A DNA stretch of 64,000 nucleotides from Marsupella aquatica (GCA_973895155.1 OZ316898.1:16916752-16980751), one strand, 5' to 3'; positions 1 to 46,811 are shown, numbered from the stretch's first letter. Made by a program: numbers and translations. The notes: a model not told the origin generated them from the sequence alone.

Positions 1-2445
1 GACAGTCCCCGTGACTGTCTTCCATACCCCACCGGCATGATGTTAGATTTGCGCTTACATCGACATTTGAACGAAAGTGGAGATCCTAGCTTGGGCTGGC
101 CTGATCTTGGAAGCTTGGGTCAGTCCAAGCCACTCCACAATCTGCAGATGTCTGAATTTTGATAAAAGCCTTCTTAAGCTCTCCAAGTAGGGACCAACGT
201 GAATATCACGAGACGTTTCAAGGCTAAACCCTGGGACGACAGTCCTCCCTATGTATCCCACGGCATAATGTTAGATATATGTATGTATATATAGACATTT
301 GAAACAAAATGGAGAATGATCCTTGGCCTGTCATTTTCTTGGATGATTGGGCCAGCCCAAGTCACTCCGTTTCTCCTACAGACATCGAATCTGAACTAGC
401 TGTCGACCTCGCACGTAAAAGTTCGGGTTCAATTTACGTCGAAGGTGTGGGGGAGCTAGACTCGCTATCAGACCAAATTGTTAATTAGGCCCTCTGCTCA
501 GCGGTAGATTTGACGTTCCTACAACTTTAGCATCCTACAACTTTCCTTTTCCCGCTTCTTCGTGCCTCATGCGCTTGGAGCTATGGGGCGAGCATCATGA
601 GGGGTTCCTACAAATCTGTACCATGCCAGGGCCTTCTAACGCCCCACAGATATGTCGCAGAGTGTAATGTACGTGATATGCCTTGAAGTGTATATATAAG
701 AGGAAGCTGTAGGAAAGTGGAGATGTTTGAATTGACATTTCCCTCAGACAGAAGGCCAGGCTGAGCCCCCCAAATCTCGTGCACCGATCTGAATTCATGG
801 AGAGAATAATTCTGTGATTTCGTTGTCGTGTACCTGAACTTTTCGCAGTCAATAAATTCAAACTCATTCTATTTTAGACGCCCTTTTAGACGGCACCCTT
901 TTTGCCCCTTCCAAAACTGCCAGACATGTAATTAACCAGCTCCAACCCTGGCCTGGAGACAAGTTGCAAGGTCGAATTCGGAAGTTATCGATCGTACTCC
1001 AGATGTACCTACTTGCTAGGACGGAACGCTTGTTGGTAAGTAAAGGAGAAATAGGCATCTGCGCGAAAGTGGAGATACTTGGGTTGGTACTTTGTTCGAA
1101 AATGCCAGTCAAACCCACTGCTCTCTCTCGTGCAAACTCTGAATTGAGCTCGTCCGCAAAATCTCATTTGTACAATTGTGGCCAGATTTCCAGTTCGTCA
1201 ATTAATGTTCTGGGACATTCTTTGCCGGGGATTTTCGCAATCCCCGACCATGGGAGATGTAAATGATTTTTGTTAACAAGTATAGCGAAACCGTGTCCCG
1301 AACCGTGTCCCGAACTGTAATGGATTTGAAGGGTTGTGAACAAGACCACCACCTGCCTGCTCGATCATGAAGCAGATTGCGGGGCAGAGTGATTGTCCCA
1401 TAGATTCTCCTGCACGTTCGGATCTTCCAAGTAGAACTTGGTATTCGTAGGTAAGTCATCATTGAACTTATGCCACCTCGGACCATCCGGACATGGTTGA
1501 CATGTCCTCCGCCTTCATTCGTACCCAGAGGAAACTTCCAGAATTTGCAATGCAGCACTACGGGTTTCCGGAAAGACGTCAACCAGCCTCAACGAGGACA
1601 AATCGGAGGATCAAATATCATTTACGATGGCCAATGGACGATGGCAACCGATTCTATGGAACGCTGCGGCAGTCCGACAAGATCTGTCAATAGACCATTC
1701 CTTCCTAAACTCTCCACGTATAAGGAAGAAAGCGAAATCTCACGAGCTGTTGACTAAACTCTGCAATAACAGTGCTCAGATATCCCACGGCATGACGTTC
1801 CATGCACATAGACATTTGAACGAAAGTGGAGGTCCCTGGGGCTGGCCATTTCTTTGGAAGATTAGGCCAGTCCAAGGCACTCCACTCTCATCCAGACGTC
1901 TGTTCAACTAATTGCCTCGTAGGTTCAATAAATAATTACTTTGTCATGGAGCAGACATACCCTGGAATGTTTGTCCACCATGTCCCACGCCATGATATAT
2001 ATATGCTAGATGTGTATATATACTAGAGACATTTGAACAAAAGTGGAGATCCTTGGTGGCCCTTTCTTGGGAGATAAGGCGAGTCAAGCTAGCTACTCGA
2101 CTCTTAAACATCTGAACTGGCCTCGCAGGTTCGATTACTGAATTTGTCATGGAGCAGACATACCTTGGAATGTTAGTCCTCCATGTCTCACGGCATGATG
2201 AACATAGATGTGTATATATATAGAGAGACGTTTGAACGAAAGGGGAGATCCTTGGGTTGGCATTTACTTGGAATTAAGCTTAGGCCAGTCCAAGCCGCTC
2301 CACTCTCCTGCAAATGTCTGGATTTTGATGAAGTCCCCTCCATCCATGTACGGACCAACGTGATTGTCACGAGCTGTTCACTAAACGCTGGAATGCGCGC
2401 GCCAGGCCTCATGAATATCCCACGGCGTGACTTTACTTGCATGAA

Positions 2446-2534
2446 GATATTTGAACGAAAGTGGAGATCCCTGGGGCTGGCCTTTTCTTGGAAGATTAGG
2501 CCAGTCCAAGGCACTCCACTCTCGTACAAACATC
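2446..2534 (+). ncRNA. Representative intact hairpin unit (AAGGCAC variant)
   Basis: GATATTTGAACGAAAGTGGAGATCCCTGGGGCTGGCCT-TTTCTTGGAAGATT-AGGCCAGTCCAAGGCACTCCACTCTCGTACAAACATC folds into an imperfect stem of roughly 35-38 bp. Confidence 0.6.
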
Positions 2535-2759
2535 TGTTCAACTGGCCTCTCAAGTTCCATTAATGATTTGTCATAGAGCAGGCCTAGCTACTAAACCCTG
2601 GAAAGTTTGTCCTCCATATCCCACCGCATGATGCTAGATGTGTATATATAGACATATGAACGAAAGTGCCTTGGATGGCGGGAGATTAGGCCAGGACTCC
2701 TCGCAGGTTCAATTCCTTTGTCGAGCAGACTAAACCTTGGAACGTTAGTCCTGACATCC

Positions 2760-2761
<2 letters not shown>

Positions 2762-2812
<51 letters not shown>
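2762..2812. repeat. (AG)n microsatellite, ~25 units, abutting a hairpin copy that lacks its 5' lower stem
   Basis: Pure AG run directly upstream of the hairpin copy at 2813. Confidence 0.95.
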
Positions 2813-2815
<3 letters not shown>

Positions 2816-5800
2816 GGGATACTTGGGCTGGCCTTTCGTGTAAGATTAGGCCAATCCAAGCCAGTCCACTCTCCTGCAAATGTCTGGGTTTTGATGAAGT
2901 CCTCTTAAACTCTCCATATTATTAAAGACCCATGCCACGTGAATTTCGTGAGCTCTTCACTAAACTCTGGAATGACAGGACCCTCATGGATATCCCACCG
3001 CAAGACGTTACACGCATAATATAGACATTTGAACGAAAGTGGAGATCCCTGGGGCTGGCCTTTTCTTGGAAGATTAGGCCAGTCCAAGGCACTCTACTCT
3101 CGTACAGATGTCAGAACGTACGTACCGTGCATCCAAAAGAATTTCTTCCCGTGGACCAGGCTAGCTTTCCAGTTTACATTGGATCCATGTGCCAGTCGCG
3201 CAGTAGCTAGATCATATTTGCATGTTTCCTGGGCCCTTCGTCATTCCTTTCAGCGGGCTCTGTCGAGGAATATTTCAGTAGTAATTTCAAAAATCTTTTC
3301 CAGGTCCTTAAACGTTTTTAACGCTCAAGATGAGAAGTAGAAGAAAACGTCAAGAGCTGCAGATCGACTGATTCTGGAATCGCATGATCAATGCTGGATG
3401 AGAATTATATTTAGATATCTGAACGTAAGTGGAGATCCTTGGGGTGGTATTTTCTTGGAAGATTAGGCCAGCCAGTTCACTCTCTCTTAAAAACATCAGA
3501 ACTGTCGACCTCGCAGCTTCAATTACAGCGATGTCGTGGAGCAGACTCGCTACGAGTCCTATTCAGTCGGTAGAATATGTGACGTCGCATCCGACACCGT
3601 TCTCTGTCACCCTTCTTCATGACTTATGCGCTTCGGAGCCATGTCGCCATCCAGCGTTTCCTAGAAATCTGCACCTAGCCATTGTTAGGCCCTCTTCCAC
3701 ATTAATTTGGCACAGAGTGATATGCGCTGAAGTGTATAGTAGGTACGTAGACAGCTGGACGAAAGTGGAGATGCTTGGATTGGGCTTCTCTTGGGACGCA
3801 AGGCCAGGCCAGCCCAAGCCACTCCACTCTCCTGCAGACAACTGAACTTATCGATCTTCCTGGTATGAGGTTAACTTCTTGCTCGTGGACACAGTCTCTA
3901 TCAGTCCATGCAGCTCATTCGGTAGTTTTGAAGCGGTCTCCCACACCACTCTGAGGCCCGAGCTGTGCAGTCGGTAGTTTAGACGCCGTCTCCAACAACA
4001 TTCCGTGTCACCCTTCGTCATGCCCGTCGTCATGCCTTATGCGCTGAGGAGCCATCCGGCGAAACATATCAGTAGAGGTTTAATCCCAACAATCTGGAGT
4101 AGGTCATTCTTAACCCCTCCCTGAATAAATATATAGCAGACTTCAATGCAATTGATATCCGCTGAAGTGTGTACCTTAGTAGACAGCTGTACGAAAGTTG
4201 AGATGCTAGCTAGGACAAGGCCAGCCCAAGCCACTTCACTCTCCTGTAGCCGTCTGATTCAATGGCTGAACTTGTAACCACACAATCGGCGAGCTATCCT
4301 TCGGTATGCTGGTAGATAGTGCTGGTAGATAGTAAAGCGAAGGTGGAGATCCTTGGGCTGGCATTTAATTTGGAATGAAAAAGGCCAGTCCAAGCCACTC
4401 CACCATCGTGAAGATATCGCAAATTTGAAAGGGTGTACTGTCACTTTTCCAGGCCCAAAGGAATTCAACAGAGAGGGACCTTTTATCAGGAGTCGTACGT
4501 ACTTAAGCAGACAAATAACGTGAACTCAAGCTATTCTTCCTCGTGCTGTTGCATGTCAAGAAGCGAGTCAAGAAGACAACTGAACCAGAGTGAAGACGTT
4601 TGGGGTGGCCTTGCAGCAGCAGGAAAGGCCAGTCCAAGCCACTCCACTGTCGTCGAGACGTCTGAAAATATATCCCTCCCGCGAGAGCAGTGTAGACTCA
4701 ATCTCCCCAACTACTGTACATTTACAATCGTTTATACTTGTTAAGGACTAGAGTAGATTGCAGCCCATGTTCGGAAGGAACGTGAACTCTGCATGCTCCA
4801 ACCGAGGTTCCAAAGTGGTCCTTCGGTTCGATGAAATTTCTATCCATGTAGATTTCTGTATGTACGAAAGTGGACTCCAGCCCAAGACACACCAGCACTT
4901 GGAGACATATCTGCTGTTATGTTCTCCGGGTATGAATTCATGGCAATTATGTCTCGATGATCTATAAGTAATTAACCGAATATTCAACAAAATATAATGG
5001 TTAAGTATGATTAATTGACACAGTCCCGAAACAGGACCTGAATTCACAGCTAAGAAGAACTCTTTCGCGCAGCGCTCCTACGTCTATAAGACATCTACTG
5101 AAAGATAGCTAGCTCCTCCTTTGCTCTAAGACATGGACAAGCTTCAAGCTACCTTTTCCTCGGTTCTAAGACATGGACAAGCTTCAAGCTAGCTCCTCCT
5201 CATTGAGTTATGAGTTCTATGGTAAGTCAATTATTGCTACTGATACACCATACTGCTGTTTCTCCTGAACTTCAAGTTACTTATAGATCATCGCTCTCCT
5301 TTTTTAATGGTTCGCAACACTCGTTGGGTGGACAAAAATTAAGACAGACTGTGCAGTGAAGTCCAACATACGGGAATGTTTGAGAATTATTCACCATTTT
5401 GTCATATTGAATCGATCAGGCTAGGGTTGACATTTACTGTAACTTTCCCGGGAACTTGCCCTTGAATACTGGTTAATTTCACACTGTAGGGTCCAACTTC
5501 CCGATCCTGGAGTGACGGTCATTGTCTCTACGTGTGGGGAGGCAAGAAACCAGTTACGGCACTTAATAAATGCTAAAGACAAACAGAGTTGGAAAAAGAA
5601 GTCCATGATATATATAGAAGGCAGTTTATATGTTCATACTGTATCAATTTAAAAGATTGTATCTTGCGCCACTGCTTACTTGAGGTTTAGGGTATATTCA
5701 TGCACCCGGCCGAATGTTTTTTATTTGTAGTTCCTCTGATCGTGGATGGCATGTACGTGAAGGTCAACAATCTTCTTTGATGCTGGGCAGTGTGTGAGTG

Positions 5801-8818: not shown

Positions 8819-11800
8819 CTAGGTTCCCTCGGCAATGTGTTCGAGTTGAGACCAACGAGGTCTCAATCTGGGGCATTCAAAGAACATGTGTTCCATAGTT
8901 TCAATGTGCTCTGTGCAGGCGGTGCACATCCCATCTCCTACGTCCCACTTAAGAGCACGAAGGTTAGAAAAGAAACCAGCGTTGAGGACCTTCCAGAAAT
9001 CCAGCTTAACGCTGGGAGATGACCATCCACTCCAAAGGTGAATCCATCTGCGTCTCCAGATCTCTTGAGTGTCCAGCGAAAACCACCTTCGATTAAGCTT
9101 CTCAATAGGTGTGTTGTATCTCTGCAGCATTAGGGCCCAGGTTTTGGTTGGTAACTTCCACCCTCTTTTTTCTCCTTGAGTCCATTTCCATTTCCATCCT
9201 TCAGCATTGACAAGTTGCACCTCCGTTATACCTCTGGACGTGTTGAGTAGCTCCATGATCTGTGTTAGCAATAGTGAAGTATGACTTCTGTTCATTCTGA
9301 TTGCCCCGTTGATTTGCTCAATAGTTTTCCACTCTCGGTCAAGATTAACCAGATCACCAACAGTTCTGATTTTCCTCGTAGCTAGATAGCTTCTGATCTG
9401 GTGCAACTCAGAAGTACAAACATTCAGATGTCTATTGAGGAGAAGACAAAGTTGTTCAGTTGAGAGATGGATAGGGATTTTCCCAGCAACAACGTCAAAT
9501 TGGAGATTCCTGTAGGTGGATTCCCATCCCCTAAGCAGGCAGTTAAGCACAGGTGCTGATGCAATCTTCAGGTCTGGAGTGAGCAGGAGACAGTCACTAG
9601 GCTCCCAGAGTTTGCGTTCCTTCTTGTGAGGTCCTTTCCTGGCATTGATTCTAATCAATGAACAAGCCATGTGAACCCAGGCTGTGTCGAAGCCAATGAC
9701 CAATTTGGTGATACTTCGCATTTTGCATACCTGAGATTGGATGTTGAACGGTCTAATGGCCAGCCCTCCTTCTTCAAATGGTCTAGTGATAGATTCCCAA
9801 GCCACAAGTGCTTTTTTGTTAGCTCGAGTGAAGTTCTTTCCCCATAGGAAGACTCTGCAAATCTTCTCTAACTCCTTGAAGCCAGTTTTTTGTATGTTAA
9901 GGAGCATAAGATGGTAGTACACAGGGATGGCCCGAATGACATGCTTGAGCAGTACTAACCTTCCAGCTTGGGTTAGAGTTCTGTTAGTCCAGTGCCTCAA
10001 TCGATTCCTAATTTTGCTTAGGAGGAAGGCAGTTTCCTGAGTGGGTTTAATAGCATTGCCAATAGGGCAGCCAAGGTAGGTAATGACTTCACCTTTGCTC
10101 GCTATACGACAGCCAGTTCTCTCTACCCATTCAGGTTGCTCTAAGTTGTCCAGTTGCACAATCACTGATTTCTCATTGTTGAGAAGGGCACCAGAGACAC
10201 GTTCGTACTTGTTGACAACGCTGCAAGCCATGTTGAATTTAGCTTCAGTGGCTTTGAGAAAAAGACCAGTGTCGTCAGCAAATAGCTGGTGCAGCAGCGT
10301 TTTTCCATTTCCTGTGTGCACTCCGTGAAGATCACCAGACATCAGTTTGTTCTCAAGTAGACACATCAGGGGTTGAGTAGCTAAGGCATAAAGAAGCGAT
10401 GATGCTAAACAGCCTTGTCTTACTCCCCGTCCAAGAGAGATAGCGTCTGTGAAGCCTCCGTTAGCATGGACTTTAGATGCAGCATCAATGACCAGGCCCT
10501 TGATGAGAGAGATGAATTTAGAATCAAAATTCATGTGATGTAACGTTTCCCACAAGAAAGCATGGTCAATCCGATTGTAAGCTTTGGCAAAGTCAAGTTT
10601 CAGGAATACAATGGGTTGCTTAGAGATGTTAACATACTCTTGACCAACTTTGAAAGCTAGTACGTTGTCCATGATGCTTCTGCCTGTAATGAAACCGATC
10701 TGTTGGATGGATACCAACTTAGGGACAACAAGCTTCAACCTGTTAGCAAGAATGTTTGCAACAATCTTGTGTGTGATAGTGAGCATAGTGAGCGGCCTCC
10801 AATTTTTTAGCCTCTGTTTATCACCGTCTTTTGGTATGAGCTTGATGACTCCTGTTGAGGCTTTTGAAGTGAGTAACCCATCCCTCCAAAATGCTCTGAC
10901 CATAGCACAACAGTCTGCCTTCATCCACTCCCAACAGTTCTGTAGGATCTCAACAGTAACTCCATCTAAACCTGGTGACTTTTCCTTGGGGAAGTGTTGC
11001 ACTACAGCACTAATCTCATCCTCACTTGGGTCTTTGATGAGAATCCAGTTCTGTTCAGGAGTGATCTTTTTTTGGATTAGGGACAAAACTTCAGCCCTTT
11101 CCTCCACGTTATCACAAACTGTTGCATCAACTTGGCATAGTTGGGTACAATACTGACTGATTTCGTCAAGAATCTGTTTCTCGTCATCAATAACAGTCCC
11201 ATTAGCCAAGGTTAGAAGCTTGATGGTTTCTCGACTCTGTTTGGCTTTCATTTGCAGGAAGAAATACCTGGATGGTGCATTGCCAAGTGATAGCCACCGG
11301 ACACGACTTCGTCTGCGCCATACCTCAGCTTCCCTTGTCTCATTAGCTTTGACTTCAGCTTCCAGTCGTACAACTTCCGTAATGGTAGCAGGATTGGGGT
11401 TACGTGCTACCTCACAGCGTTGAGCTTGTAGTTGTGTCACTATGTCAGGTTGCTTTCTTTTTTTCTCATCCAGACGTCTCTTCTCAGCAACCAGGATCTT
11501 CTTCATTCTGCTGGTGGCTAGATCCCAATGTATTCTTTCATCCCTACTAGGAGCAGCATTAGTTCCCTGGCATGCTGCTTTGACTTGCTCCATAATTTCT
11601 GGTTTTTGTAGCATTTTTGCATCCATCTTGAAATAACTTGACTTCCAGATGCTAGATGAAGTGCTAATGTATTGGAGAGCAAAGGTGACTAAGACTGGGA
11701 GATGGTCAGACAAAGTTTGTCGGTCATCGTGATGAATCTGTCTAATGACAGTGCACCAATTTTCCCGATTATTGCAGTAGATCCTATCTAATCTGGCTTG

Positions 11801-12410
11801 ATCGAATCGAGCCCCGTGACTGGCTTGGCGAGTGAACTTGGGTCCTTTTCGTGTTGCTGCGCAGAGGTAGGAGTCAACCATATCACCCTCATCAATCAGT
11901 CTGGCCCACTTTCTGCTTTCGCTGCCATGTAGTAGAGGGCTGGGACCGATGGAGTCGTTAGGTTGTTCCACCATATTGAAGTCACCTCCAAGCACCCAGT
12001 TCCCTTGCATGATTTTGTTGCTAATCCATTCCCAGAGTCGTTTCCGTCTGGTTCTGCTCCCACGTCCATTGGGTGCGTAGACAGATCCCACGTTTAACGG
12101 CCCCTTGCTGGATTCAATAGTAATCCAGGCAAAGGTTCCATCTCCTTTGCATCATTGGTCAAGAATCTTAACTGATGCAGAAGTGACAACAGCCGTCCCA
12201 GCCCAACCATCTTCCCCGTAGTCCACAACAAATTGTCCCCCTTGCAGTAAATTAGCCAGAGTGAAATCACATTTGTTTGCAGTTACCTTGCATTCCTGGA
12301 GGCACAGAGCATGTATATTTGGTTGTATTCTGCAAATCCAATTCCCTAGAATTCGGGATCTATTCGGGTCTCCCAGACCATTCATGTTTCACGAGCAAAT
12401 CTTAATGTCA
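8819..12410 (-). pseudogene. LINE ORF2 (APE endonuclease-reverse transcriptase-zf-RVT), with in-frame stops
   Basis: Motifs LCLQE, GGDFN, RLDRIY, SDHLPV (endonuclease); KSPGLDG, WRPLTML, KLDFAKAY, GVRQG, LFADD, YLG (RT); CTAC..ETMEHMFFECP. Stop at 12152; the main open frame is 8819-12091. Confidence 0.93.
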
Positions 12411-14326: not shown

Positions 14327-15183
14327 ATGGGGACTTTCAAGCTTGGGGGACCCAAGTATGAAGTGACAAAGTATGATGGGCGCTCTGACTACTTGCTATG
14401 GGAGAAGCAGGTGAAGGGAGTGCTCTATGCGTCAGGGATGGGCCAACTGCTGAGCCCTCGTAAGACGATGTTGATGAGAAACAATGGGACCGCATGCAGG
14501 AGCAGGGAGTATGGTGTGTTACACTCTATCTCATGCCTCCCATCATCAAGCAGTTGGGTGCACATAAGGATTGCATGTCCTTGTTTGCGGAATTGCAGAG
14601 CAAGTATCACCGCAAGGAGTTGTCGAACCGGCTCTACACTTCCTACAAACTCATGAGTTTCAGGATGAAAGAATCCGGTACAAAGTTGCAAGACCATGTG
14701 GATGCTTTCAACGACATGGTCGTTGACTTGGAAAACCTTGGGGAGACTTTGAATGATGAGACGAAGGCTCTGCAGCTTCTTAGTTCATTGCCTCCATCTT
14801 ACCAGTCCCTATCACGAGTGTTGTTGCATCGTGATAGGGATACCATTTCATACAATGACGTGGTAAGTTCTCTGCTTAGTGATGATCTTCAGCAGAAGAT
14901 GCACATCACATCACAGCCTTTATCATCTGGTGCTGCCCTCAATGTTAACCGTGGGAGGGGTATGCAGCGACCAACTGGGGACCGTAGAACCCAGTTTAGA
15001 TCTAAATCCAGATCTAAGTCCAAGGGTAAATCCCCTCAGAGGAGGCAGGTGACATGTTGGAAGTGCAACCAAGTTGGACACTTCAAGCGAGACTGTAAGG
15101 GAAAGGCAGCGGAAACTTCATCGGCAAATGTGGCTAGGGCTGATGGAGAAGCTGATTTACTCAATGATGAGTATGTTTTATGA
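14327..15183 (+). pseudogene. gag: copia gag (copy 1), 1-bp deletion frameshift near 14461
   Basis: KYDGRSDYLLW, LLSSLPPSY and CWKCNQVGHFKRDC knuckle; compared with the intact gag of copy 2. Confidence 0.9.
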
Positions 15184-18100
15184 AGCCGGGGGTATGCCCT
15201 GTGCACGTCATCTAGGAGAGCAGATGATGTGTGGATTCTTGATTGTGCTTGCTCTTTTCATATTTGATACATTCGTGAGTTTTTCAGTTCTTACTCTATT
15301 TCAAACGGTTCAGTTCTGATGGGAAATGATCACTCCTGTCAAATTGAGGGAATTGGGTCTATGAAGATTCAAATGTTTGATGGCGCTGTGCGCACAGTGT
15401 CCGGAGTCAGGTATGTACCTGGCATGCGTAAGAATCTGATTTCACTCGGTGTGTTGGATTCAAATGGTCATCAATGGAGCGTTATTGATGGTGAACTTCA
15501 AGTCAGGTCGGGAGAGACAGTGATTTTGAAGGGGAGTAGACAAAAGAATTTGTATGTGTTACAGGGCAATACTGTATGTGGAGAGGCCAATGTAACCAAG
15601 TCTCACGAGGAGATGACTCAACTGTGGCATTCACGGCTAGGCCACATGAGTGAGAAGGGTTTGGCTATCTTACGGAAGAATGGACTCATTTCTGATTTGC
15701 AATCTTATAAATTAGAGTTTTGTGAGCATTGCATTCTTGGAAAGCAGCATCGTCGTGCTTTTGGTGTTGGAACTCATCGTTCCAAAGCGGTTCTTGAGTA
15801 CATACATAGTGACGTGTGGGGTCCATCCCCGACTCCCTCACACTCTGGAAAGTTGTACTATGTATCATTTATTGATGATTACTCAAGATTTGTGTGGATT
15901 TATTTCATGACGCATAAGTCTGATATCTTGTCCATTTTTAAGAAGTGGAAGGCCCAGGTGGAGAATCAGACTGGAAACACGATCAAGTGTTTGGATACAA
16001 GGGTGAAGAGTCTGAGGTCAGACAACGGCGGGGAGTACACTTCAATGGAATTTGAAGAGTACTGTTCAGAACAGGGGATAACTCGCCATCTCACCATAGT
16101 TTATACTCCGCAGCAGAATGGTGTCGCTGAGAGGCTCAATCGGACACTGTTGGAGCGGTCACGGAGTATGTTGAGCCAATCAGGTTTACCACAAGAATTT
16201 TGGGCAGAAGCTGTCAATACCGCAGCTTATTTGGTAAATCTTTCTACTTCTAGTGCTATCAATTTCAAAACGCCGTTTGAGATGCGCTATAAGCGGCAAG
16301 CAGACTATCATGGCTTGGTAGTTTTTGGAAGTGATGCATATGCTCTCACACCGAAGCAGAATAGGACCAAGTTGGATCCTACCTCCAGGAAATGTGTTTT
16401 TCTTGGGTACCAGAGTGGTGTGAAAGCCTATAGGCTATGGGATCCTATTGCCTGTAAGCTCGTTGTCAGTAGGGATGTTTCCTTCAATGAATCCAGATTA
16501 TTGAAGGAGGGGGAGAATACTCAGGTCTCCCGTACTGACAAAGGAAAATCTCCTATCCCGGATCTCGTTGAGGGGGAGATTGGTTATGAGGTGCATGACC
16601 GGAGAGAAGGAGTTGCTCCAATTATGGAGCTGGTTCCTGTGCCAGAGGAACCAGAGGAGTTTGTTGATGCTGGTGAGCAGCAAGTGGATGCTGTTGAGCT
16701 TCAAATTGTACCAGCACACGCAGATCAACTAGAGTCATCGGCTAGAAGAACATTTGGTCGCACTGTACGCGCTCCACCAAGGTATGGACAGTGGGTTGAT
16801 TCATCTCAACTGCAAGAGGATGATTTTACAGCTGATGATGAGGGTGATGCGTTAATTTTGGAAGAAGGGGAACCTTCTTCATTTCATGAGGCAAGTGCTT
16901 CAAAGGAGAAGCAGAAGTGGACTGCAGCAATGCAAACGGAGATGCAGTCACTAAAGGACAACAAAACTTGGGAGCTTGTTAAGCTGCCTAAGGGTCAGCA
17001 AGTGGTGGACAGCAAGTGGATTTACAAGTTAAAGGATAATTCCATAGGAGGTGGATCGAAGGTCTACAAGGCTAGATTGGTAGCAAAGGGATTCACACAA
17101 GAGAAAGGTGTGGATTACAATGAGATCTTCTCACCAGTTGCTAAGTACTCTACAATACGACTATTGTGTGTACTTGTTGTAATATTTGGTCTGCTGCTAG
17201 ATCAGATGGATGTTGTCACAGCTTTCCTCTATGGCACGTTGGAAGAGGTGATCTTCATGAGACAACCGCTAGGTTTTGTGAAGAGAGGACAGGAGGAATT
17301 GGTTTGCAGATTGCTGAAATCCTTGTATGGGTTGAAGCAGTCACCAAGACAGTGGAACAAGCGGTTTGACGATTGGATTCGGTCACAAGGTTTTCACAGA
17401 AGTGTATTTGACCCTTGTGTGTATTTGAAACCGGTAAAGAATGTTGTCTTTGGGTTCATTGTTTTAGTACTTTATGTGGATGATATGCTAATTGCAGCCA
17501 AGGATAGGTCTGAGATTGTTAAGCTCAAGGCACTGCTTAGTGCAGAGTTTAAGATGAAGGACTTAGGGCCAGCTAAGAGGATTTTGGGTATGGAGATCAC
17601 TAGGGACTTGGAGGCTGGCAAGCTATGGTTGACGCAGAGCAGTTATGCGAGGAAGGTAATTGCAAGGTTCAACATGGGGAATAGCAAGCCAGTAAGTACC
17701 CCGTTGGCTCCACACTTCAAGTTATCATCAGCGTTCTGTCCTACGGATGACACAGAGAAGGGGTTGATGTCAAAGGTTCCGTATGACAAGGCAGTGGGGA
17801 GTCTCATGTATTTGATGACTTGCACTAGACCTGATCTTGCCATGGCTATGGGCAAGGTGAGCAGGTACATGTCGAATCCAGGGAAGGTACACTAGGAAGC
17901 AATGAAGTGGATTATCAGGTACTTGAAGGGTACCGTGGATCATGGTCTTTTATTTGATGCGAATGCAAAGAATGCTAAATCATTGATTGGCTATGTTGAT
18001 TCTGACTATGGACAAGATTTGGACCGAAGGAGATCAACAATAGGATACGTGTTCACACTTGGCGGTGGATGCATAAGTTGGAGGTCTACTTTGCAGAAGT

Positions 18101-32879: not shown

Positions 32880-35800
32880 ATGACCACTGCATATTAGAAA
32901 TGGTGAGTTCGAAGTTAAAACTCAGTCAGCCATTCCAGGTATTCCAAGTGTTCCGCGCGCAGTAGAAGTGTCACACATCCCAATGTACAATCGGTTCCAA
33001 TTTGGAGAGGCCTATCATACTGTGGGGCTTCAAAGAAGCTCCATTATCGCCACTGTCCACGCGCCATACACTTTCTGGAATTACACATAGAAAACTTTCA
33101 GGCTAGATGAATAAACCTTACACCAAGGCACACGGTACAATTTTCACTCAAACAGAATGGTCTAAAATTCCTTGTTGATGGATTTGCTTATCCAAAGCTG
33201 TCTATCAGTGCCATGTGTTTAGCGTACGAATTACGGTAACTGGTTTCGTCCTTCCGAAAGGGTGACTGTCACCCTTTCGGAAATTTCCCTAAGTGGAAAT
33301 AGCAGAAGGAACGGGACTACGGGAGGCGAAATGTCAGCCCCAGTTGGCCAGTTAGTTTCACTTTTCATATTGGCAGAATAATTCTTATTTTTTGGACTTC
33401 AATGCACAGTGCGTGGTCCCCCCTGTGTTGTGAAGATTCATTAAAAAAATGGTAGCGACCTATATATAACTTGAAGTTCAGGACAAGTTAAAGCATAGGG
33501 TGCGCAGCGCCAGAGCTTACCATACAACACACACCACCCATCGAGAGTACGTTCTTGAAAGTTGTGCAAGCCCGTGAGCAGAGAAGGAGCTATCTTCTAG
33601 TGGTTTGACTTGTGCGAGTCCCTGAGGAGCTTGGAAGAGCTATGTTTTAGTGGTAGGTCAAATAACTGAGTTCATTCTCACGAATGTCGGATTCAGGTGC
33701 TGTTTAGGGATTGTCTCAATTCAGGCACAGCCATTTTGTGATCATTCGACCCATCGTCGCTTCTCTATAGTGCCTTGGTCAGCAGCCACATAGGTTCCAT
33801 GATTTGTGTACCCGGCGAACGTCACAGCTACGGAGCTGCAAGATGAAAGCAGATGTCTCCACGATCCTGCAGTTTCTTGAACTGGACTTTACTCCGGGCT
33901 TTACTCTCGGAACAATTTGATGCCTGCCGCAAGAAGCTCCAGTGTCTTTCAGCAACCCACAAGGCTCCGACTTTTCAGTTGTCATCGAACCGGATGACCA
34001 TGTTGGAGCAGGGATCGTTCCTTCCGAACATCGACTGCAATCTATTCTGGTCCTCGACGAGTACAAGCGACTGGAAATGCAGTTCGGGAGGTTTGAGTTT
34101 CCAGTGCTTTCGAGTAACGTATATTCAGACGTCTGGACGAGAGTGGAGTGGCTTGGACTGGCCTTTCCTACTAATGAAAGGCCAACCCAAGCATCTCCAC
34201 TCTTGTTCAACTGTCGTCTTGATCAACATACAACGGCATACGGAAGAATAGACTGAATTCACGCGCGTTTCATTTGTCTGCTTACGATTCCCGCCAAACT
34301 GCCTCGCCATTCTTATCCTGCAAACGTTGCGGAGAGTAGAGGAATTGGTGGAATGATGCTTTTGTGCAATCTGTGGTGCCCCCGGTGGTGCCACAGCAGT
34401 TCGCCTCGCATGCAATTTCACTTAATGTGCGAAGGCTTACTAGGGACATTGAGTGCAATTGTCCAGACACAAGAAAGAAACACGAACCTACGAATCAGTG
34501 GAGTACGTAGCTATTCTTTCCTCGGAAGGAATACGGCAGGCCCAGCATCTTCACTACAGCCATCGTTGCGTACAATTATCAGTGCGAGCTGCGCGCATGG
34601 CCATTCAAAACGGAATTGCCATCAGACCCGGTAATCAGTGGGAGCTGGTTGATGTAGTCCTCAGGAGCCCACCCGACTATTTCCACTCTGCAATACATTA
34701 TGCGAAATTTTGTGTCCAATATAGAAACTTGGAGCGAGATCGAGACACACAGTAGAGAATGTTTCTACTTGTAACAGACATGGCGCAGTTAGTCTCAGTC
34801 TGTCTGTTCCATTCCTTCGCGCCTGGAGAAGTGATGGTACACCTGGTACCTTTGAGATGATTCAGATATGTGCTCGATGGTGGAGTGGCTTGGACTGGCC
34901 TTTTCTTTCCCAAGTAAATGCCAGCCCAAGGATCTCCACCTTCGCGTATCCATCTAGCAGCCTTTTATCTTTGAGATGATTCAGATATGTGCTCGATGGT
35001 GGAGTGGCTTGGGGATTCAGATATGTGCTCGATGGTGGAGTGGCTTGGAGATTCAGATATGTGTTCGATGGTGGAGTGGCTTGGACTGGCCTTTTTCTTT
35101 CCGAAGGAAGGGCCAACCCAAGGATCTCCACCTTCGCGTAGCTATCTATCACACTTCAAAAACAGTGCCACTACACTTGAACTCAAGTCACTGGCTTCAG
35201 CACGACCCTCGGCAGACCTAATTCTGAATTTATCTGAGAAGATTTGACCAGTTCGTGACTTGACGTGGCATGTTTTTCACAGGAAAACCCAGCCCTTGGA
35301 AGTTGCCCACAGGTCCTACAGCACGTTTCCTACTCGACAAACCGACCCGGCAAGAGCAGCCATCACTCTGCGTCAAAATTCTGGTAGCAGCTTTTGCAAT
35401 TTCGTGCCGCAAATCACGCGGATGACACGACCTACTACACGGTTTTGCCTGGGTACATGGAACATTGACATCTCTCATGGTCGGGGAGTGCGAAAATCCC
35501 TGCCATAGGAGGTCCCACGAAATGTGGACAGAAAAAAGAACATGAGAGAGATTTTTGAAGATAAGAACAATTCAGAAGTTTGCACGAGAGTGGAGTGGCT
35601 TGGACTGGCCTTTTCTGCAAAGAAAATACCAGCCCAAGTATCTCCACTTCCGTGGAGATATCTACGTCACATTTGGCAACTTTCAAAAGAGACTTCCATG
35701 CGAATATGTACATCTGGAGGATGGTTAACTCCAGAACTTGCTTAGTTGTTGAGCTTTTTATCTTGAGAATTGGATCTGATTAGTTATATGTGTGACAGTT

Positions 35801-36060
35801 TTGGCCGAGGCAGCAAGTAGAGACTAAGATAGATGCGCCTGAAAGTACCAACTATATCTCAATTGTTATGAACTCAGAACAATTCAGAGTTGCTTGGAAT
35901 GGACTCTTTGAATGGCCTGGTGTCCAAAGAAAGGTCCATCCAATTATCTCCATTTTCACAAAGCTTTTCACTATTAGTATACACTTCAGGCTCTACACTA
36001 CATGTTGAGACAAATTAGGGAGGTGAAAAAAGACTTAGCACAGATTTGTAGGTCATTTTT
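32880..36060 (-). repeat. Arm 2 of the inverted segmental duplication (partner 600-5960)
   Basis: Same matches as arm 1, in collinear reverse-complement order. Confidence 0.85.
34978..35085. repeat. 36-bp x3 tandem repeat of the hairpin 3' arm and flank
   Basis: GATTCAGATATGTG(C/T)TCGATGGTGGAGTGGCTTGG(G/A) x3. Confidence 0.95.
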
Positions 36061-36180
36061 CATGATGTTCTTGGAGTTTGCAAAATTGAAAACAATCCAA
36101 GTATTTTCAATTTTAAAATAATTTTGGTAGCATCTTCAAAATTTTGATAGTTATATAATTTCAAATTTTCAGTTTAGATA

Positions 36181-36852
36181 ATCTCAAGTCCTTCGCGCAT
36201 AGGGAATATATATTGTAATTTATGACTATATTCAGATGTTTTTTTCATTTATTTTTAATAATATATTATATATAATAAAATATTGTAGTACAAATTTTAA
36301 TAAAATTTATATATTATTTTTGTTTTATTTTATTAATTTTAAAATTAAGTTTTTTAAATTAAAAATTAAAATTTTTTTCAAAATGATAAATTAATTTTTA
36401 TCTTTTCACGTATATTTAACTAAATGTTGACTTAAAAATATATTAAAATAATAAAAGTTAGTTATTAGATTTTGAAATATGTATTAAAATTAAAATTGTC
36501 ATAACAATAATGAATCTATTCCATGATCACGTAACTGAACCCTATTTTAGAGTCATTATCAAATATTATATTAAAAAAAATTCAATATAGAATTTATAAT
36601 TGTTAAATTTTTTAAATATATAAATAATTTATATTAAATATGCAATAAAAACATAATATTATCAGATTTTATTAATTTATAAAATAAATATTTTATTTTT
36701 TATTAAAAATTTAAAAATAAAATTATTTTTAAAATTTGTATTGCAATATTTTATTATAAATTATATATTTATTATAAAAAATAAATACAAATGACATATA
36801 AATATGATACTAGATTGCAAAAAATGTTCCCTATGCGCAAAAAACTTGAGAC
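36181..36852. mobile_element. Very AT-rich MITE/foldback element with a probable TA TSD (Tc1/mariner-Stowaway-like)
   Basis: Ends ATCTCAAGTCCTTCGCGCATAGGGAA and TTCCCTATGCGCAAAAAACTTGAGAC are imperfect inverted repeats. Inverted similarity continues inward (ATAATAAAATATTGTAGTACAAATTTTAA vs TTAAAATTTGTATTGCAATATTTTATTAT). TA flanks both sides. Confidence 0.75.
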
Positions 36853-38459
36853 TATTGATGACATCAAACTAGAGAATCTGATGAGTAAAGTGTTTATTTG
36901 AGATTATAGATACTATTATAACTAGAAAATCTAAAAATTCAAAATTCACAATTATATCATTTTAGATGACCATAAATGGAGCATCTCCAAGACACTAGTG
37001 GATTCCTTTGGATTGGCCTCACCTTCCGAGAAAAGGCTAACCCAAGGATCTTCATCCCATAGGTATGGAGTAGTGTCATTTCGGGTTTAGTTAAATCACA
37101 CCTACCCCTCTAAAGGGCTACGGGTAACCCGTAGCTCTCATTCTAAGGAGTACAAGTTCAAAATTTGCCTTTGAGTTCCACAAAAGGTGTTGATTGCAAA
37201 ATCTTTTTTTGGCAACTACTTCACAAAATGTGCTAGTGTTCCACCTTTTATGGTGAGTAGTGAGACATGGAATGAGGGTTTTATAGTGACAGGTGTGATT
37301 TAACTGCTGGTGGCAGTCCTCTAGGCAACCGCATGTGTATCATAAGAATTTTAGAGGAGTTAATCAAAATCCAGACATCTGCACCAGTAGTGGTGTGGAC
37401 CGTCCTGCCAAATCTTTCATGACAACGCAGCAGCAGCGAAAGGATCTCGACTATAGTTCAAGTACACATCTACCATCATGGACTAGGATATGGAGAAGTA
37501 ACATTCCAGGGTTCAGTGACCGGTTCCAATCATTTCACACTGGTCCTTACAAAGAACTCTCGAGGACTTCATAAAATATTGGAGAATCTGGATTGACAAG
37601 TTTTGAGAGAATGATGTCAAATGCCCGACGGCCCACCATTCCATTAAGAAGGATCAAAATCGGCTGACATCATATTTGACACATTTGATTCGCCAATTTG
37701 TCGTCTGGACCTGGCCCACATCTTCCCGGCAACCCGTACGTAGTGCCGCATTCTGCCACACGTTCCCTCCGCGTATCGATCTCGTGAATCAAGAACAATG
37801 CATCCATCTGCACCATGTCCCAGGCGGTCCGAGGAGGCACTGAATCAAGTAAGTTGGACGTACATTTGTGGAGAATGGAACATTTGTGGCCGGTAAACTC
37901 AGTTGTCTGCGGGAGAGTGGAATGGCTGCCTTGGACTGAGTGGCCTTTCCTTCGATAAGACGAAGAGGCCAGCCGAGGCATGTCCATGGCCAATCTCGGA
38001 CAGTGTCTAACTGCAATATACACCACGGATTCACGGAAGGATGGAGAGGAAGGCACGGTTCCCAACCCCGACAACCACTTGGGACATTTCATTCTTCGAC
38101 GTCTGCTTCTCTGCTTTTAAATCTATATATTGCACTGTTCTAGTCTTCACCGCAAGCGTCATGAAGGATGACATGTCAACGCTGTCGGAGAAAGGCGAAA
38201 ATTCGGCACCTCTACACGAGGCTAGCGACCAAGCTGAATGGCATCCATTGCAGAAGGCGAATGATGATCCACTGATTGATCTTATTAGGTGCACGGTATC
38301 CAGCGTCGAGGGCCAATGATGATCCACTGATTGATCGTAGGTCCAGGCCTTTTCCTCAAAGTAACGTGAATCATTCACAAAAATTACACCTCCACTGGTC
38401 ACATGAATGAAATGCCGGTGGACAAAATAGCCCCTTTTCCCACACTTTTGTCACTTTCT

Positions 38460-40740: not shown

Positions 40741-43700
40741 CTACTTGTGATGCAATTGCAAAACCTGCAATACGTCACGGTGTCTAGAAAAACTCTCCAA
40801 AGGAATCACTTTGATAAATGCGTCAGCCGGGTTGAGTTTACCATCAATCTTGACTAGCTCAAACAAATTATCAAACACAGCCTGCCTGATAAAATGGTAC
40901 CTAACGTCAATGTGCTTCACTCTGCTGTCCATCACCTGGTTCACAGCAAGGTGGAGCGCACTTTGACTATCACAATGGAGCTTCACATTCCCCTGTGGCA
41001 ATCCCATTTCAGTGATAAGTCTATCCAACCAAATCGCTTCCTTTGCTGCTTCCGCAGCTGCAACATACTCCGCTTCTGTAGTAGACTGAGCAATACACTT
41101 CTGCAAAGTAGACCTCCAACTTATGCATCCACCGCCAAGTGTGAACACGTATCCTGTTGTTGATCTCCTTCGGTCCAAATCTTGTCCATAGTCAGAATCA
41201 ACATAGCCAATCAATGATTTAGCATTCTTTGCATTCGCATCAAATAAAAGACCATGATCCACGGTACCCTTCAAGTACCTGATAATCCACTTCACTGCTT
41301 CCCAGTGTACCTTCCCTGGATTCGACATGTACCTGCTCACCTTGCCCATAGCCATGGCAAGATTAGGTCTAGTGCAAGTCATCAAATACATGAGACTCCC
41401 CACTGCCTTGTCATACGGAACCTTTGACATCAACCCCTTCTCTGTGTCATCCGTAGGACAGAATGCTGATGATAACTTGAAGTGTGGAGCCAATGGGGTA
41501 CTTACTGGCTTGCTATTCCCCATGTTGAACCTTGCAATTACCTTCCTCGCATAACTGCTCTGCGTCAACCATAGCTTGCCAGCCTCCAAGTCCCTAGTGA
41601 TCTCCATACCCAAAATCCTCTTAGCTGGCCCTAAGTCCTTCATCTTAAACTTTGCACTAAGCAGTGCCTTGAGCTTAACAATCTCAGACCTATCCTTGGC
41701 TGCAATTAGCATATCATCCACATAAAGTACTAAAACAATGAACCCAAAGACAACATTCTTTACCGGTTTCAAATACACACAAGGGTCAAATACACTTCTG
41801 TGAAAACCTTGTGATCGAATCCAATCGTCAAACCGCTTGTTCCATTGTCTTGGTGACTGCTTCAACCCATACAAGGATTTCAGCAATCTGCAAACCAATT
41901 CCTCCTGTCCTCTCTTCACAAAACCTAGCGGTTGTCTCATGAAGATCACCTCTTCCAATGTGCCATAGAGGAAAGCTGTGATAACATCCATCTGATCTAG
42001 CAGCAGACCAAACATTACAACAAGTACACACAATAGTCGTATTGTAGAGTACTTAGCAACTGGTGAGAAGACCTCATTGTAATCCACACCTTTCTCTTGT
42101 GTGAATCCCTTTGCTACCAATCTAGCCTTGTAGACCTTCGATCCACCTCCTATGGAATTATCCTTCAGCTTGTAAATCCACTTGCTGTCCACCACTTGCT
42201 GACCCTTAGGCAGCTTAACAAGCTCCCAAGTTTTGTTGTCCTTTAGTGACTGCATCTCCGTTTGCATTGCTGCAGTCCACTTCTGCTTCTCCTTTGAAGC
42301 ACTTGCCTCATGAAATGAAGAAGGTTCCCCTTCTTCCAAAATTAACGCATCACCCTCATCATCAGTTGTAAAATCATCCTCTTGCAGTTGAGATGAATCA
42401 ACCCACTGTCCATACCTTGGTGGAGCGCGTACAGTGCGACCAGATGTTCTTCTAGCCGATAACTCCGGTTGATCTGCGTGTGCTGGTACAATTTGAAGCT
42501 CAACAACATCCACTTGCTGCTCACCAGCATCAACAAACTCCTCTGGTTCCTCTGGCACAGGAACCAGCTCCATAATTGGAGCAACTCCTTCTCTCCGGTC
42601 ATGCACCTCATAACCAATCTCCCCCTCAAGGAGATCCGGGATAGGAGATTTTCCTTTGTCAGTACGGGAGACTTGAGTATTCTCCCCCTCCTTCAATAAT
42701 CTGGATTCATTGAAGGAAACATCCCTACTGACAACGAGCTTACAGGCAATAGGATCCCATAGCCTATAGGCTTTCACACCACTCTGGTATCCAAGAAAAA
42801 CACATTTCCTGGAGGTAGGATCCAACTTGGTCCTATTCTGCTTCGGTGTGAGAGCATATGCATCACTTCCAAAAACTACCAAGCCATGATAGTCTGCTTG
42901 CCGCTTATAGCGCATCTCAAACGGCGTTTTGAAATTGATAGCACTAGAAGGAGAAAGATTTACCAAATAAGCTGCGGTATTGACAGCTTCTGCCCAAAAT
43001 TCTTGTGGTAAACCTGATTGGCTCAACATACTCCGTGACCGCTCCAACAGTGTCCGATTGAGCCTCTCAGCGACACCATTCTGCTGCGGAGTATAAACTA
43101 TGGTGAGATGGCGAGTTATCCCCTGTTCTGAACAGTACTCTTCAAATTCCATTGAAGTGTACTCCCCGTCGTTGTCTGACCTCAGACTCTTCACCCTTGT
43201 ATCCAAACACTTGATCGTGTTTCCAGTCTGATTCTCCACCTGGGCCTTCCACTTTTTAAAAATGGACAAGACATTAGACTTATGCGTCATGAAATAAATC
43301 CACACAAATCTTGAGTAATCATCAATAAATGATACATAGTACAACTTTCCAGAGTGTGAGGGAGTCGGAGATGGACCCCACACGTCACTATGTATGTACT
43401 CAAGAACCACTTTGGAATGATGAGTTCCAACACCAAAAGCACGACGATGCTACTTTCCAAGAATGCAATGCTCACAAAACTCTAATTTACAAGATTGCAA
43501 ATCAGAAATGAGTCCATTCTTCCGTAAGATAGCCAAACCCTTCTCACTCATGTGGCCTAGCCGTGAATGCCACAGTTGAGTCATCTCCTCGTGAGACTTG
43601 GTTACATTGGCCTCTCCACATACAATATTGCCTTGTAACACATACAAATTCTTTTGTCTACTCCCCTTCAAAATCATTGTTTCTCCCGACCTAACTTGAA

Positions 43701-44013
43701 GTTCACCATCAATAACGCTCCATTGATGACCATTTGAATCCAACACACCGAGTGAAATCAGATTCTTACGCATGCCAGGTACATACCTGACTCCGGACAC
43801 TGTGCGCACAACGCCATCAAACATTTGAATCTTCACAGACCCAATTCCCTCAATTTGACAGGAGTGATCATTTCCCATCAGAATTGAACCGTTTGAAACA
43901 GAGTAAGAACTGAAAAACTCACGAATGTAACAAATATGAAAAGAGCAAGCACAATCAAGAATCTACACATCATCTGCTCTCCTAGATGACGTGCACAGGG
44001 CATACCCCCAGCT
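40741..44013 (-). pseudogene. pol: copia pol, copy 2; stops at ~43963 and 43450
   Basis: Same motifs as copy 1; 889-aa open stretch at 40741-43410. Confidence 0.95.
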
Positions 44014-44871
44014 TCATAAAACATACTCATCATTGAGTAAATCAGCTTCTCCATCAGCCCTAGCCATATTTGCCGATGAAGTTTCCGCTGCCTTTCCCTT
44101 ACAGTCTCGCTTGAAGTGTCCAACTTGGTTGCACTTCCAACATGTCACCTGCCTCCTCTGAGGGGATTTACCCTTGGACTTAGATCTGGATTTAGATCTA
44201 AACTGGGTTCTACGGTCCCCAGTTGGTCGCTGCATACTCCTCCCACGGTTAACATTGAGGGCAGCACCAGATGATGAAGGCTGTGACGTGATGTGCATCT
44301 TCTGCTGAAGATCATCACTAAGCAGAGAACTTACCACGTCATTGTATGAAATGGTATCCCTATCACGATGCAACAACACTCGTGATAGGGACTGGTAAGA
44401 TGGAGGCAATGAACTAAGAAGCTGCAGAGCCTTCGTCTCATCATTCAAAGTCTCCCCAAGGTTTTCCAAGTCAACGACCATGTCGTTGAAAGCATCCACA
44501 TGGTCTTGCAACTTCGTACCAGATTCCTTCATCCTGAAACTCATCAGTTTGTAGGAAGTGTAGAGCCGGTTCGACAACTCCTTGCGGTGATACTTGCTCT
44601 GCAATTCCGCAAACAAGGACATGCAATCCTTATGTGCACCCAACTGCTTGATGATGGGAGGCATGAGATAGAGTGTAACACACCACACTCCCTGCTCCTG
44701 CATGCGGTCCCATTGTTTCTCATCAACATCGTCTTCACGAGGGCTCAGCAGTTGGCCCATCCCTGACGCATAAAGCACTCCCTTCACCTGCTTCTCCCAT
44801 AGCAAGTAGTCAGAGCGCCCATCATACTTTGTCACTTCATACTTGGGTCCCCCAAGCTTGAAAGTCCCCAT
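44014..44871 (-). CDS. gag: copia gag, copy 2 (open frame)
   Basis: MGTFKLGGPKYEVTKYDG...CWKCNQVGHFKRDC...DEYVL*. The frame is also open upstream of this ATG. Confidence 0.88.
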   Translation of the reverse strand: MGTFKLGGPKYEVTKYDGRSDYLLWEKQVKGVLYASGMGQLLSPREDDVDEKQWDRMQEQGVWCVTLYLMPPIIKQLGAHKDCMSLFAELQSKYHRKELSNRLYTSYKLMSFRMKESGTKLQDHVDAFNDMVVDLENLGETLNDETKALQLLSSLPPSYQSLSRVLLHRDRDTISYNDVVSSLLSDDLQQKMHITSQPSSSGAALNVNRGRSMQRPTGDRRTQFRSKSRSKSKGKSPQRRQVTCWKCNQVGHFKRDCKGKAAETSSANMARADGEADLLNDEYVL

Positions 44872-46811
44872 CTTCTTCTTTACCTTGAGCTCCGGTAGTA
44901 GTACTGCTTCCTCCACCACACGCCGCACCGGTGATGGTATCGGTGTCACGTGCTCTTCCTCCTGCTCCTCTCTCTGCCCCTGAAACCTCCGCGGTGATCC
45001 TCATGCTTCAAGTTCCACGTCTTCGAAAAACTCCTCCGAATCACTCATATAAGAAAGTCACAAAAAATGTTGTTTTTCACAACTTCTCAAAAAACTCGAA
45101 ACTCAACACCGCCGCGTAGCCCACAAAGCTAGGAGTCCAATACTGAAAACCAAAATCAAAATCGAAATTTGACGGAAAAGTTATTCAAATTTCGGTCGAG
45201 GTGGGTAAAACCTTGGGAAACTCCCCCGTTTTGACCACCTCAGGGAATAACCGAAATACCAAGTACAACCCGTTGTCGGAATTGCGATGTGATTGGTGCG
45301 CTGCATTGCCAACTTCAATGGCTATGACCTCGCCGAAAAATAACCAAAAAAGTTACCGTTCGGCGGATGAAATCTTTGTCGAACGGTCAAAAAATAGCTC
45401 TCTGGTTTTTTGGAATATTCTATGACCCTTGTACAGGCCCTGTGGGAATTTTGGAAGAACAATCGAGGGGCTGACATGTGTCCTCGAACCCCCAAAACCC
45501 CCTACCACCCTTCGTCGTCGAAATCTGGTCGCGCGCGCAGAAAATACACACGGCAGAATGTACCCCTCGACACCAAACGCAAGATATCTCACTCGGGTTT
45601 TGACGAAATCAAGATCCGATTTCAGATTTGGAAAGTAGACTCCGAGGCGATGAAGATCGATATAAGAAGCACCCAAAACGAGGAAAGAACGAGGGAGAAA
45701 AAAATTGGTAAAGATGACAGATTTCTCTCAATTGCCATAGCCAATTTCGAATCAGTTTTTCAAAGAGAAATAAATGGTACCTTGTCAACAACGAATGTTG
45801 ATCAATTGCACTTGGTGCCGTCACCAAGTCCAACAAGGTAATTGATTTTGCTTAGCCTTCCTCTTTGCATCAAAGAGCCAAAACAATCGTCTTGCCTCAA
45901 TCTCTCCGTTGAGTCAAAACACTTGACGTTTCTCCCTCCGAGTCGATTGCCAACTTTCTTCACAAAATCCAGAACGACGAAAACTTAGATCTCTCTGCAC
46001 CACGAGCTCCGTTCAACGATTTCTTCACACCGTTAGAAAGCTCTTGCCCTGATCTATCCGTTGAGCCCATAAACTCCAAGTTCCATGCGATGGAACTCTG
46101 GAAAATCCACCAACACTCAACGCTGGAAAACCGTCATGAAATCCCGTCACGAACATACGTCACCTCCCAAGCATGCTCTGATACCAATTGTTGAGCATAG
46201 ACGACGATCGCAACGGCAAGCCCATGAACCATCTAACGCACAATAGTCGACACAAGAGATACGTGGTTCACCTCCTTGAGGCTACGGCCATGAGAACACA
46301 CAAGAGAGCTTTGCTGAACTCTAAGCCCGTCGGCTATACCGAGTCTCCACAGTGTAAGCTTTCCCTATCTCTCAAGTGGCTCCATAACAATGAGCCTTGG
46401 TTCTACCTCTCCAAGCACACATGCCTCTTATGATATAGTGTGCAACTTAGTTGTACCTAACCACATAGTTGTACCTAATCACGTAGTTGTACCTAACCAC
46501 ATAGTTGTACCTAATCACGTAGTTGTACCTAACCACATAGTTGTACCTAATCACGTAGTTGTACCTAACCACGTAGTTGTACCAACCCACGTTGTTGTAC
46601 CAACCACGTCATACCTAACCTAGACGTAAGAGTAAATACCCAACACCATCTAATAGGGTGTCTCAAATGTTCAAAATTAGCCATAAAATAATGGTCATAA
46701 CTTTTTCACAAGGGAATGTAAAAGTCTTGTTTGTTTGTTTTTCTCATTCACTTCTACCAATCACAAGAATTGCAATGAATGCTCATCGTTTAGTCTATTT
46801 TGGTGTCTGTG

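Follow-up and report, generated by a model that had tools for sequence, protein, structure and literature searches.

The described plant systems closest to the locus reported here are the miR395 and miR2118 clusters of rice, the polycistronic MIRNAs of the moss Physcomitrium patens and Marchantia MIR390-MIR11676, in which same-orientation hairpins with the shape of microRNA (miRNA) precursors arose by tandem duplication and in which the arms are better conserved than the loops and spacers. Published liverwort work has found almost no clustered MIRNA genes: one polycistronic locus with two hairpins has been reported in M. polymorpha (PMC9291395), and no neighbouring stem-loops were found in Pellia (PMC4368373). 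Here we describe, in a 64,000-nt stretch of the genome of the liverwort Marsupella aquatica (GCA_973895155.1, OZ316898.1:16916752-16980751; hereafter "the window", with positions counted from its first base), two facing clusters that together contain ~26 units of one hairpin, each ~90 nt long. The array resembles the plant clusters in the orientation, shape and tandem origin of its hairpins and in the superior conservation of their arms; unlike them, it has no arm match in Rfam or in published text, comprises ~26 units with tens more elsewhere in the genome, and is described here from DNA sequence.

Large, amplified, lineage-specific miRNA clusters, thought to be co-transcribed, occur in animals, for example primate C19MC and zebrafish miR-430. 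Like the array, these pack tens of near-identical hairpins closely together, but they are animal loci processed by Drosha and Dicer, as opposed to Dicer-like 1 (DCL1), and have no sequence relation to it. The reading that we favour, and hold with about even confidence, is that the array represents a new, lineage-specific and amplified family of MIRNA-like hairpins, processed from base to loop, in which the invariant arm would act as the guide.

Two clusters and their units

Units were located by scanning the whole window with an nhmmer profile, for which 11 good units served as input, and with a covariance model run with its filters off. Cluster A comprises 16 plus-strand units between 57 and 4670, on which profile and covariance model agree, plus a remnant at ~4850-4915 recognised by eye; its units lie 145-433 bp apart, with one interval of 756 bp. 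Cluster B (33844-38006) is inverted, on the minus strand, and comprises nine units and two partial copies with the 3′ arm only. Searches with the arm 22-mers returned 14 and 11 matches at ≤3 mismatches, compared with none in 100 shuffles. No real model match was observed in the 64-kb window outside the two clusters; a weak covariance-model match at 49339-49403 was rejected as an unrelated small hairpin. Because window bases 1-56 resemble the spacer that follows other units, cluster A probably extends upstream of the window. RNAfold predicts strong single hairpins for 13 units (A01, A05, A07, A08, A10, A11, A13, A15, A16 and B05-B08), with free energies (ΔG) of −36 to −53 kcal/mol and z-scores of −3 to −10 relative to shuffles. 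The units are as follows (ΔG in kcal/mol; bits are model scores).

57-160, +: A01, strong hairpin with a 4-nt insertion in the 5′ arm (ΔG −44.3, z −5.7; 90.9 bits)
289-394, +: A02, partly decayed hairpin (ΔG −26.1; 54.9 bits)
697-797, +: A03, decayed, counterpart of B04 (z 0.3; 30.7 bits)
1049-1147, +: A04, 5′ arm retained and 3′ arm decayed, counterpart of intact B05 (folding, A/B alignment, covariance model)
1806-1908, +: A05, intact hairpin with a variant 3′ arm, AAGGCAC (ΔG −46.4, z −6.1; covariance model)
2023-2120, +: A06, decayed middle unit of a three-unit higher-order repeat (folding, repeat comparison, covariance model)
2222-2326, +: A07, intact hairpin (ΔG −36.8; covariance model)
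2441-2542, +: A08, intact hairpin, 91% identical to A05, with spacers at 66% (ΔG −49.8, z −6.8)
2646-2710, +: A09, fragment with an internal deletion (nhmmer profile, folding)
2794-2892, +: A10, upper duplex intact, 5′ lower stem overwritten by an (AG)26 microsatellite at 2762-2813 (folding, covariance model)
3019-3120, +: A11, intact hairpin and best model match (ΔG −52.6, z −9.9; 106.7 bits)
3409-3505, +: A12, 3′ arm decayed (folding, covariance model)
3745-3850, +: A13, intact hairpin (ΔG −40.6; covariance model)
4177-4262, +: A14, internal deletion removing part of the 5′ arm and the loop (folding, covariance model)
4323-4426, +: A15, intact hairpin, both arms 22/22 identical to B07, of the type with tens of extra genomic copies (folding, contig depth, covariance model)
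4570-4670, +: A16, intact hairpin, 3′ arm 22/22 identical to B08 (folding, A/B alignment, covariance model)
4850-4915, +: A17, remnant with the lower stem and the start of the 5′ arm, then a deletion (by eye, below model thresholds)
37894-38006, −: B01, decayed (12.6 bits)
37366-37475, −: B02, decayed, flanks matching the A07/A09 spacers (profile, BLAST, covariance model)
36975-37065, −: B03, upper stem only (30.8 bits)
35879-35974, −: B04, decayed (profile, folding, covariance model)
35567-35667, −: B05, intact hairpin with the exact 22-mer 3′ arm (ΔG −43.7, z −6.6)
35048-35151, −: B06, intact hairpin with the exact 3′ arm (folding, covariance model)
34977-35049, −: two partial tandem copies with 3′ arm and 3′ lower stem only (nhmmer profile)
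34857-34959, −: B07, intact hairpin with the exact 3′ arm (folding, A/B alignment, covariance model)
34120-34220, −: B08, intact hairpin with the exact 3′ arm (ΔG −51.9, z −9.2)
33844-33962, −: B09, remnant (23.8 bits)

Between B07 and B08 (34480-34700, minus strand), two further possible hairpin remnants (AGAGTGGAAATAGTCGGGTGGGC... and GTAGTGAAGATGCTGGGCC...) can be seen by eye, below the model thresholds. Cluster B is divided between B03 and B04 by a very AT-rich low-complexity block (36000-36980, GC fraction ~0.32), probably a later insertion, and a 40-bp tandem repeat of 2.4 copies (5107-5201) lies just past the end of cluster A.

Hairpin geometry and predicted products

In base-to-loop processing DCL1 measures ~15-17 nt up from the base of the stem. 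The consensus unit has a stem base of AGAC/GUCU followed by an imperfect lower stem, which below the GUGGAG that opens the upper duplex is 15-17 nt long (alignment columns 4-20 or 6-20) and thus conforms to this ruler. A 3x3 internal loop lies at the centre of the ~21-22-bp upper duplex, which also has a G:U pair that is almost invariant; the terminal loop is short and variable. In the consensus structure 84% of cells pair, a figure that drops to 31-44% if the 3′ side is shifted by 1-3 columns.

The criteria for plant MIRNA annotation set out by Axtell and Meyers in 2018 reportedly ask for a single foldback of <300 nt, without secondary stems or large loops inside the miRNA/miRNA-star duplex; for at most five mismatched duplex positions, at most three of them in asymmetric bulges; and for 20-24-nt reads in replicate libraries, of which one duplex with 2-nt 3′ overhangs supplies 75% or more. 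As to the first, 13 units form a single foldback of ~90-100 nt. As to the second, 11 units have 2-5 unpaired positions per predicted 21-nt duplex (minimal folding free energy index 0.69-1.10), and the main irregularity is the symmetric 3x3 loop.

An earlier note on this DNA had described an array of 16-17 same-strand copies of a conserved hairpin at 62-4890, spaced by 150-430 bp with one interval of ~750 bp, and had assigned to it a plant pre-miRNA geometry with a 3x3 loop, a G:U pair, a lower stem of ~15-16 nt and a variable loop. The copy number, the spacing, these structural features (with the lower stem at ~15-17 nt) and the fit to the DCL1 ruler were all recovered. As for an array of conserved hairpins, the copies are present, with strong folding restricted to nine of the 17 cluster A units and the other eight partly or fully decayed; as for its extent, the units do lie in that range, but the family is not confined to it, as the inverted cluster at 33844-38006 shows.

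If the hairpins are transcribed, the DCL1 complex would measure ~15-17 nt up from the stem base and cut, and a second cut ~21 nt further up would release a 21-nt duplex. Transcription of the array strand would then yield products of approximately GUGGAGAUCCUUGGGCUGGCC and CCAGUCCAAGCCACUCCAC(UC or CA). The invariant block itself is the 22-mer AGGCCAGUCCAAGCCACUCCAC, and the bases directly 3′ of it vary (UC, CA, UG), such that an array-strand 3p product with a 2-nt overhang would extend into variable bases, and would start with C. Were the opposite strand transcribed, the invariant arm would give UGGAGUGGCUUGGACUGGCCU, a 21-mer that is contained in the invariant block as read on that strand and has a 5′ U. 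G:U pairs outnumber A·C mismatches on the array strand (54 versus 19), a count that is biased by the folding of that strand and by shared ancestry and is not decisive. We retain both strand readings. In either case, the strictly conserved arm may serve as the guide in Argonaute, acting on a putative complementary RNA.

Searches for a described relative of the hairpin were negative. Rfam 15 gave no match at gathering thresholds, its best sub-threshold match (mir-3913, 32.6 bits versus a threshold of 100, on both strands) being noise; no 12-17-mer of either arm, in RNA or DNA letters, was found among 8.4 million full texts, and the supplements of PMC4368373 and PMC10841014 contain no match to the arms. 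Metagenome scans returned no match to the exact 21-mer, and the 27 loci recovered with a gapped two-arm pattern were all rejected as chance (~10 bits versus the profile). FRH1 (miR11861; UGUGUGAGAAGAGGCCAAUGU; PMC6141232) was rejected as an identity, its sequence being unrelated to the array arms; its target MpRSL1 is known, whereas the array family has no such assigned target.

Two promoter-based identities were also rejected. For hairpin genes linked to transfer RNA (tRNA) and transcribed by RNA polymerase III, ARAGORN found no tRNA and there is no consistent B box: eight B-box-like motifs occur in the window, compared with 3.9 expected from shuffles, and only two of them lie in cluster A spacers. 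A small nuclear RNA (snRNA)-type promoter was considered for a motif resembling the upstream sequence element (USE), as follows.

253-268, 1780-1795, 1980-1995, 2183-2198, 2415-2430, 2616-2631 and 2990-3005, +: ATCCCAC(G/C)GCATGA, like the plant snRNA USE

This USE-like ATCCCACGGCATGA precedes the hairpins by 27-44 nt and is restricted to the young A01-A11 subfamily; in many cases TATATATA comes next, abutting the stem base. The promoter was dropped on account of that restriction and because the motif leaves too little distance for transcription to start ahead of the stem; the motif is probably part of the repeat unit.

Conservation of one arm and growth of the family

Conservation is concentrated in the arms, and most strongly in one of them. 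Among 12 intact units, mean pairwise identity is 0.93 for the 3′ arm, 0.80 for the 5′ arm, 0.67-0.69 for the lower stems, 0.53 for the loop and 0.44-0.49 for the immediate flanks, a gradient of the kind seen in pre-miRNAs. In three A/B unit pairs the flanks are 59-63% identical and the loops are kept no better than the flanks, whereas the arms are identical at 120/132 positions (Fisher p = 2e-12). Two of these pairs, A15/B07 and A16/B08, match at 22/22 positions of the 3′ arm; in the third, B05 remains intact but the 3′ arm of A04 has decayed. As read from the alignments, the family evolves by birth and death, under purifying selection that acts on a single 22-nt sequence and would hold some copies while others decay. 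The earlier note's expectations that the hairpins would be more conserved than their spacers in a proper alignment, and the 3p arm more so than the 5p arm, were thus upheld, as was its failure to recognise a known miRNA family.

Two conserved blocks that are not hairpin units were also observed. The first (~38 bp, GGGGATTTTCGCAATCCCCGACCATGGGAGATG...) lies ~100 bp downstream of A04 and of B05 (1228-1265, plus strand; 35463-35500, minus strand), is ~90% identical between the clusters where its flanks are ~61%, and holds a 6-8-bp stem-loop whose folding is not significant on the array strand and reaches z −2.6 on the opposite strand, in cluster A only. The second (TAGATTGCAG...ATGTTCGGAAGGAACG) lies downstream of A16 and B08 (4754-4782, plus strand; 34018-34046, minus strand) and is nearly identical between the clusters.

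Clusters A and B face each other across ~29 kb and represent an old inverted segmental duplication, collinear by BLAST beyond the hairpins themselves. Within cluster A there is a younger higher-order repeat of three units and ~635 bp (A05-A06-A07, A08-A09-A10, then A11), in which the spacers are 66% identical, the A05 and A08 hairpins 91%, and the middle unit has decayed in both copies. Spacers are homologous from unit to unit and across clusters, which demonstrates at the sequence level that hairpin and spacer were duplicated together in tandem, with the one old inverted duplication in addition, and that the family did not spread by transposition.

Many plant hairpin repeats derive from miniature inverted-repeat transposable elements (MITEs). 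Like MITE-derived miRNA-like hairpins, the array unit is a short element consisting almost wholly of two long inverted arms; unlike them, it has homologous spacers that reveal tandem duplication, no target-site duplications (no direct repeats flank the stem bases) and no dispersed copies in the window, where units occur only in the two clusters. For these reasons a MITE identity, which the earlier note had named as a refutation of its proposal, was rejected.

Further copies were found with contigs from four public runs (two studies, 2025, coded organisms A and B), which represent DNA and were placed on positions 1-5000. Contig depth over the core of A15 (4343-4509) is ~5-fold that of the adjacent sequence in one run and ~30-45-fold in the other three, and most of the extra A15-core contigs carry the B06/B07-type loop base; the genome must therefore hold tens of additional copies outside the window. 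They have a common downstream flank and joints at which the sequence goes back 93-99 positions with 27-32 other letters between, and thus form compact tandem arrays with a period of ~120 nt. As gaps of 27-32 nt leave no room for separate promoters, co-transcription of these hairpins, if they are expressed, is plausible. Tandem Repeats Finder detects no satellite array of units at 1-5400, although such ~120-nt-period arrays exist elsewhere, because the spacers in the window are too diverged.

The surroundings of the clusters contain the following features, the last two of which are probably host genes (ORF, open reading frame).

8819-12091, −: long interspersed nuclear element (LINE; endonuclease, reverse transcriptase, zf-RVT), between the clusters
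14494-17895, +: copia element ORFs, just downstream of the LINE, between the clusters
40741-44949, −: second copia element, beyond cluster B
55306-55809, −: exon-like ORF in the last 10 kb of the window, with a weak sequence match to isocitrate/isopropylmalate dehydrogenase
59666-60061, −: exon-like ORF, also in the last 10 kb, with a weak sequence match to prolyl oligopeptidase (S9)

Alternative explanations and significance

Several observations weigh against a family of MIRNA-like hairpins. Roughly half of all units are partly or wholly decayed by RNAfold. The covariation that the earlier note had proposed to look for in the units is weak: five pairs show double changes, not above shuffled controls, and only two are clean compensatory pairs (columns 8-102, C:G to U:A, and 20-90, A:U to G:C), each probably one inherited event. 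The two strands fold equally well (summed ΔG over the 13 intact units, −567 kcal/mol sense and −568 kcal/mol antisense), neither predicted array-strand product begins with U, and no credible target site for the four possible guide 21-mers was found within the 64-kb window. None of the four runs containing the locus (0/4) is on record as RNA. In the contigs of organism B, 30 of the 31 best-supported differences fall in spacers (binomial p = 1.5e-4), as expected under selection on the hairpins, but this bias is partly artefactual, since the 31-mers repeated within hairpins cause contigs to break there. Arm identity could also owe something to short-tract gene conversion between repeats, although conversion alone would require tracts that end exactly at the arm ends in six units.

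A stronger form of the MIRNA-like reading, which we put forward tentatively and regard as possible but doubtful, is that one private liverwort miRNA has been amplified to ~60+ hairpin genes in mirror-image, closely packed polycistronic clusters, on the scale of animal C19MC or miR-430.

Of the rivals, we consider it unlikely that the hairpins are transcribed without being canonical miRNA genes, whether as young or imprecisely diced loci giving heterogeneous small interfering RNAs (siRNAs) via other Dicer-like enzymes or as a source of repeat-associated siRNAs. The high copy number (~26 units here and tens elsewhere), the transposon-rich setting, the many decayed copies and the array-strand products without a 5′ U are all in keeping with such a locus. 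Against this, the 22-nt arm is exact across duplicates whose flanks are ~60% identical, which points to a defined guide sequence and not to bulk siRNA, and the stem is short (~40 bp) with the geometry of a DCL1-type ruler.

That the units act as DNA, as a dyad-symmetric satellite or as inverted-repeat protein-binding sites kept for non-B DNA or for binding, without an RNA product, seems to us quite unlikely. The compact A15-type tandem arrays elsewhere, the equal folding of the two strands, the gene-poor and transposon-rich region and the lack of an RNA run among the four would suit this reading. Selection for cruciforms would, however, favour perfect palindromes and symmetric conservation, whereas here the 3x3 mismatch and the G:U pair persist and the arms differ (0.93 versus 0.80); the length of the lower stem is kept despite sequence variation; and the spacers in the window are too diverged for a satellite to be detected.

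Neutral decay of a relic is very unlikely. The relic might have been a foldback or a MITE-like element whose copies arose by later tandem duplication, the apparent conservation of the arms being due to concerted evolution. The decay of about half of the units, the non-significant covariation and the MITE ancestry of many plant hairpin repeats speak for it; against it, there are no target-site duplications, the spacers are homologous, no copies occur beyond the two clusters in 64 kb, and in six units conversion tracts would have to end exactly at the limits of the 22-nt arm, with the adjacent loop and lower stem free to diverge.

Should the hairpins not be expressed, the arm-specific conservation would still need some other sequence-specific explanation. 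Returning to a family of MIRNA-like hairpins, the invariant 21-22-mer offers a direct handle for target finding by complementarity. If small-RNA data confirm such a family, it would be notable both for its size and for its occurrence in a liverwort. If the hairpins are diced, they would constitute a new, highly amplified miRNA family; as intact copies sit next to decayed ones in both of the old duplicate clusters, that family would also illustrate the birth and death of miRNA genes in a clean, natural setting. If there are indeed ~60+ hairpin genes, they would escape the usual plant miRNA pipelines, in which multi-mapping reads are discarded, and would exceed by a wide margin every other miRNA gene family known from bryophytes. 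Such a size would imply that a high dosage is strongly needed, or else that the miRNA is in an arms race whose target evolves fast, for instance a transposon, a virus or a gene family.

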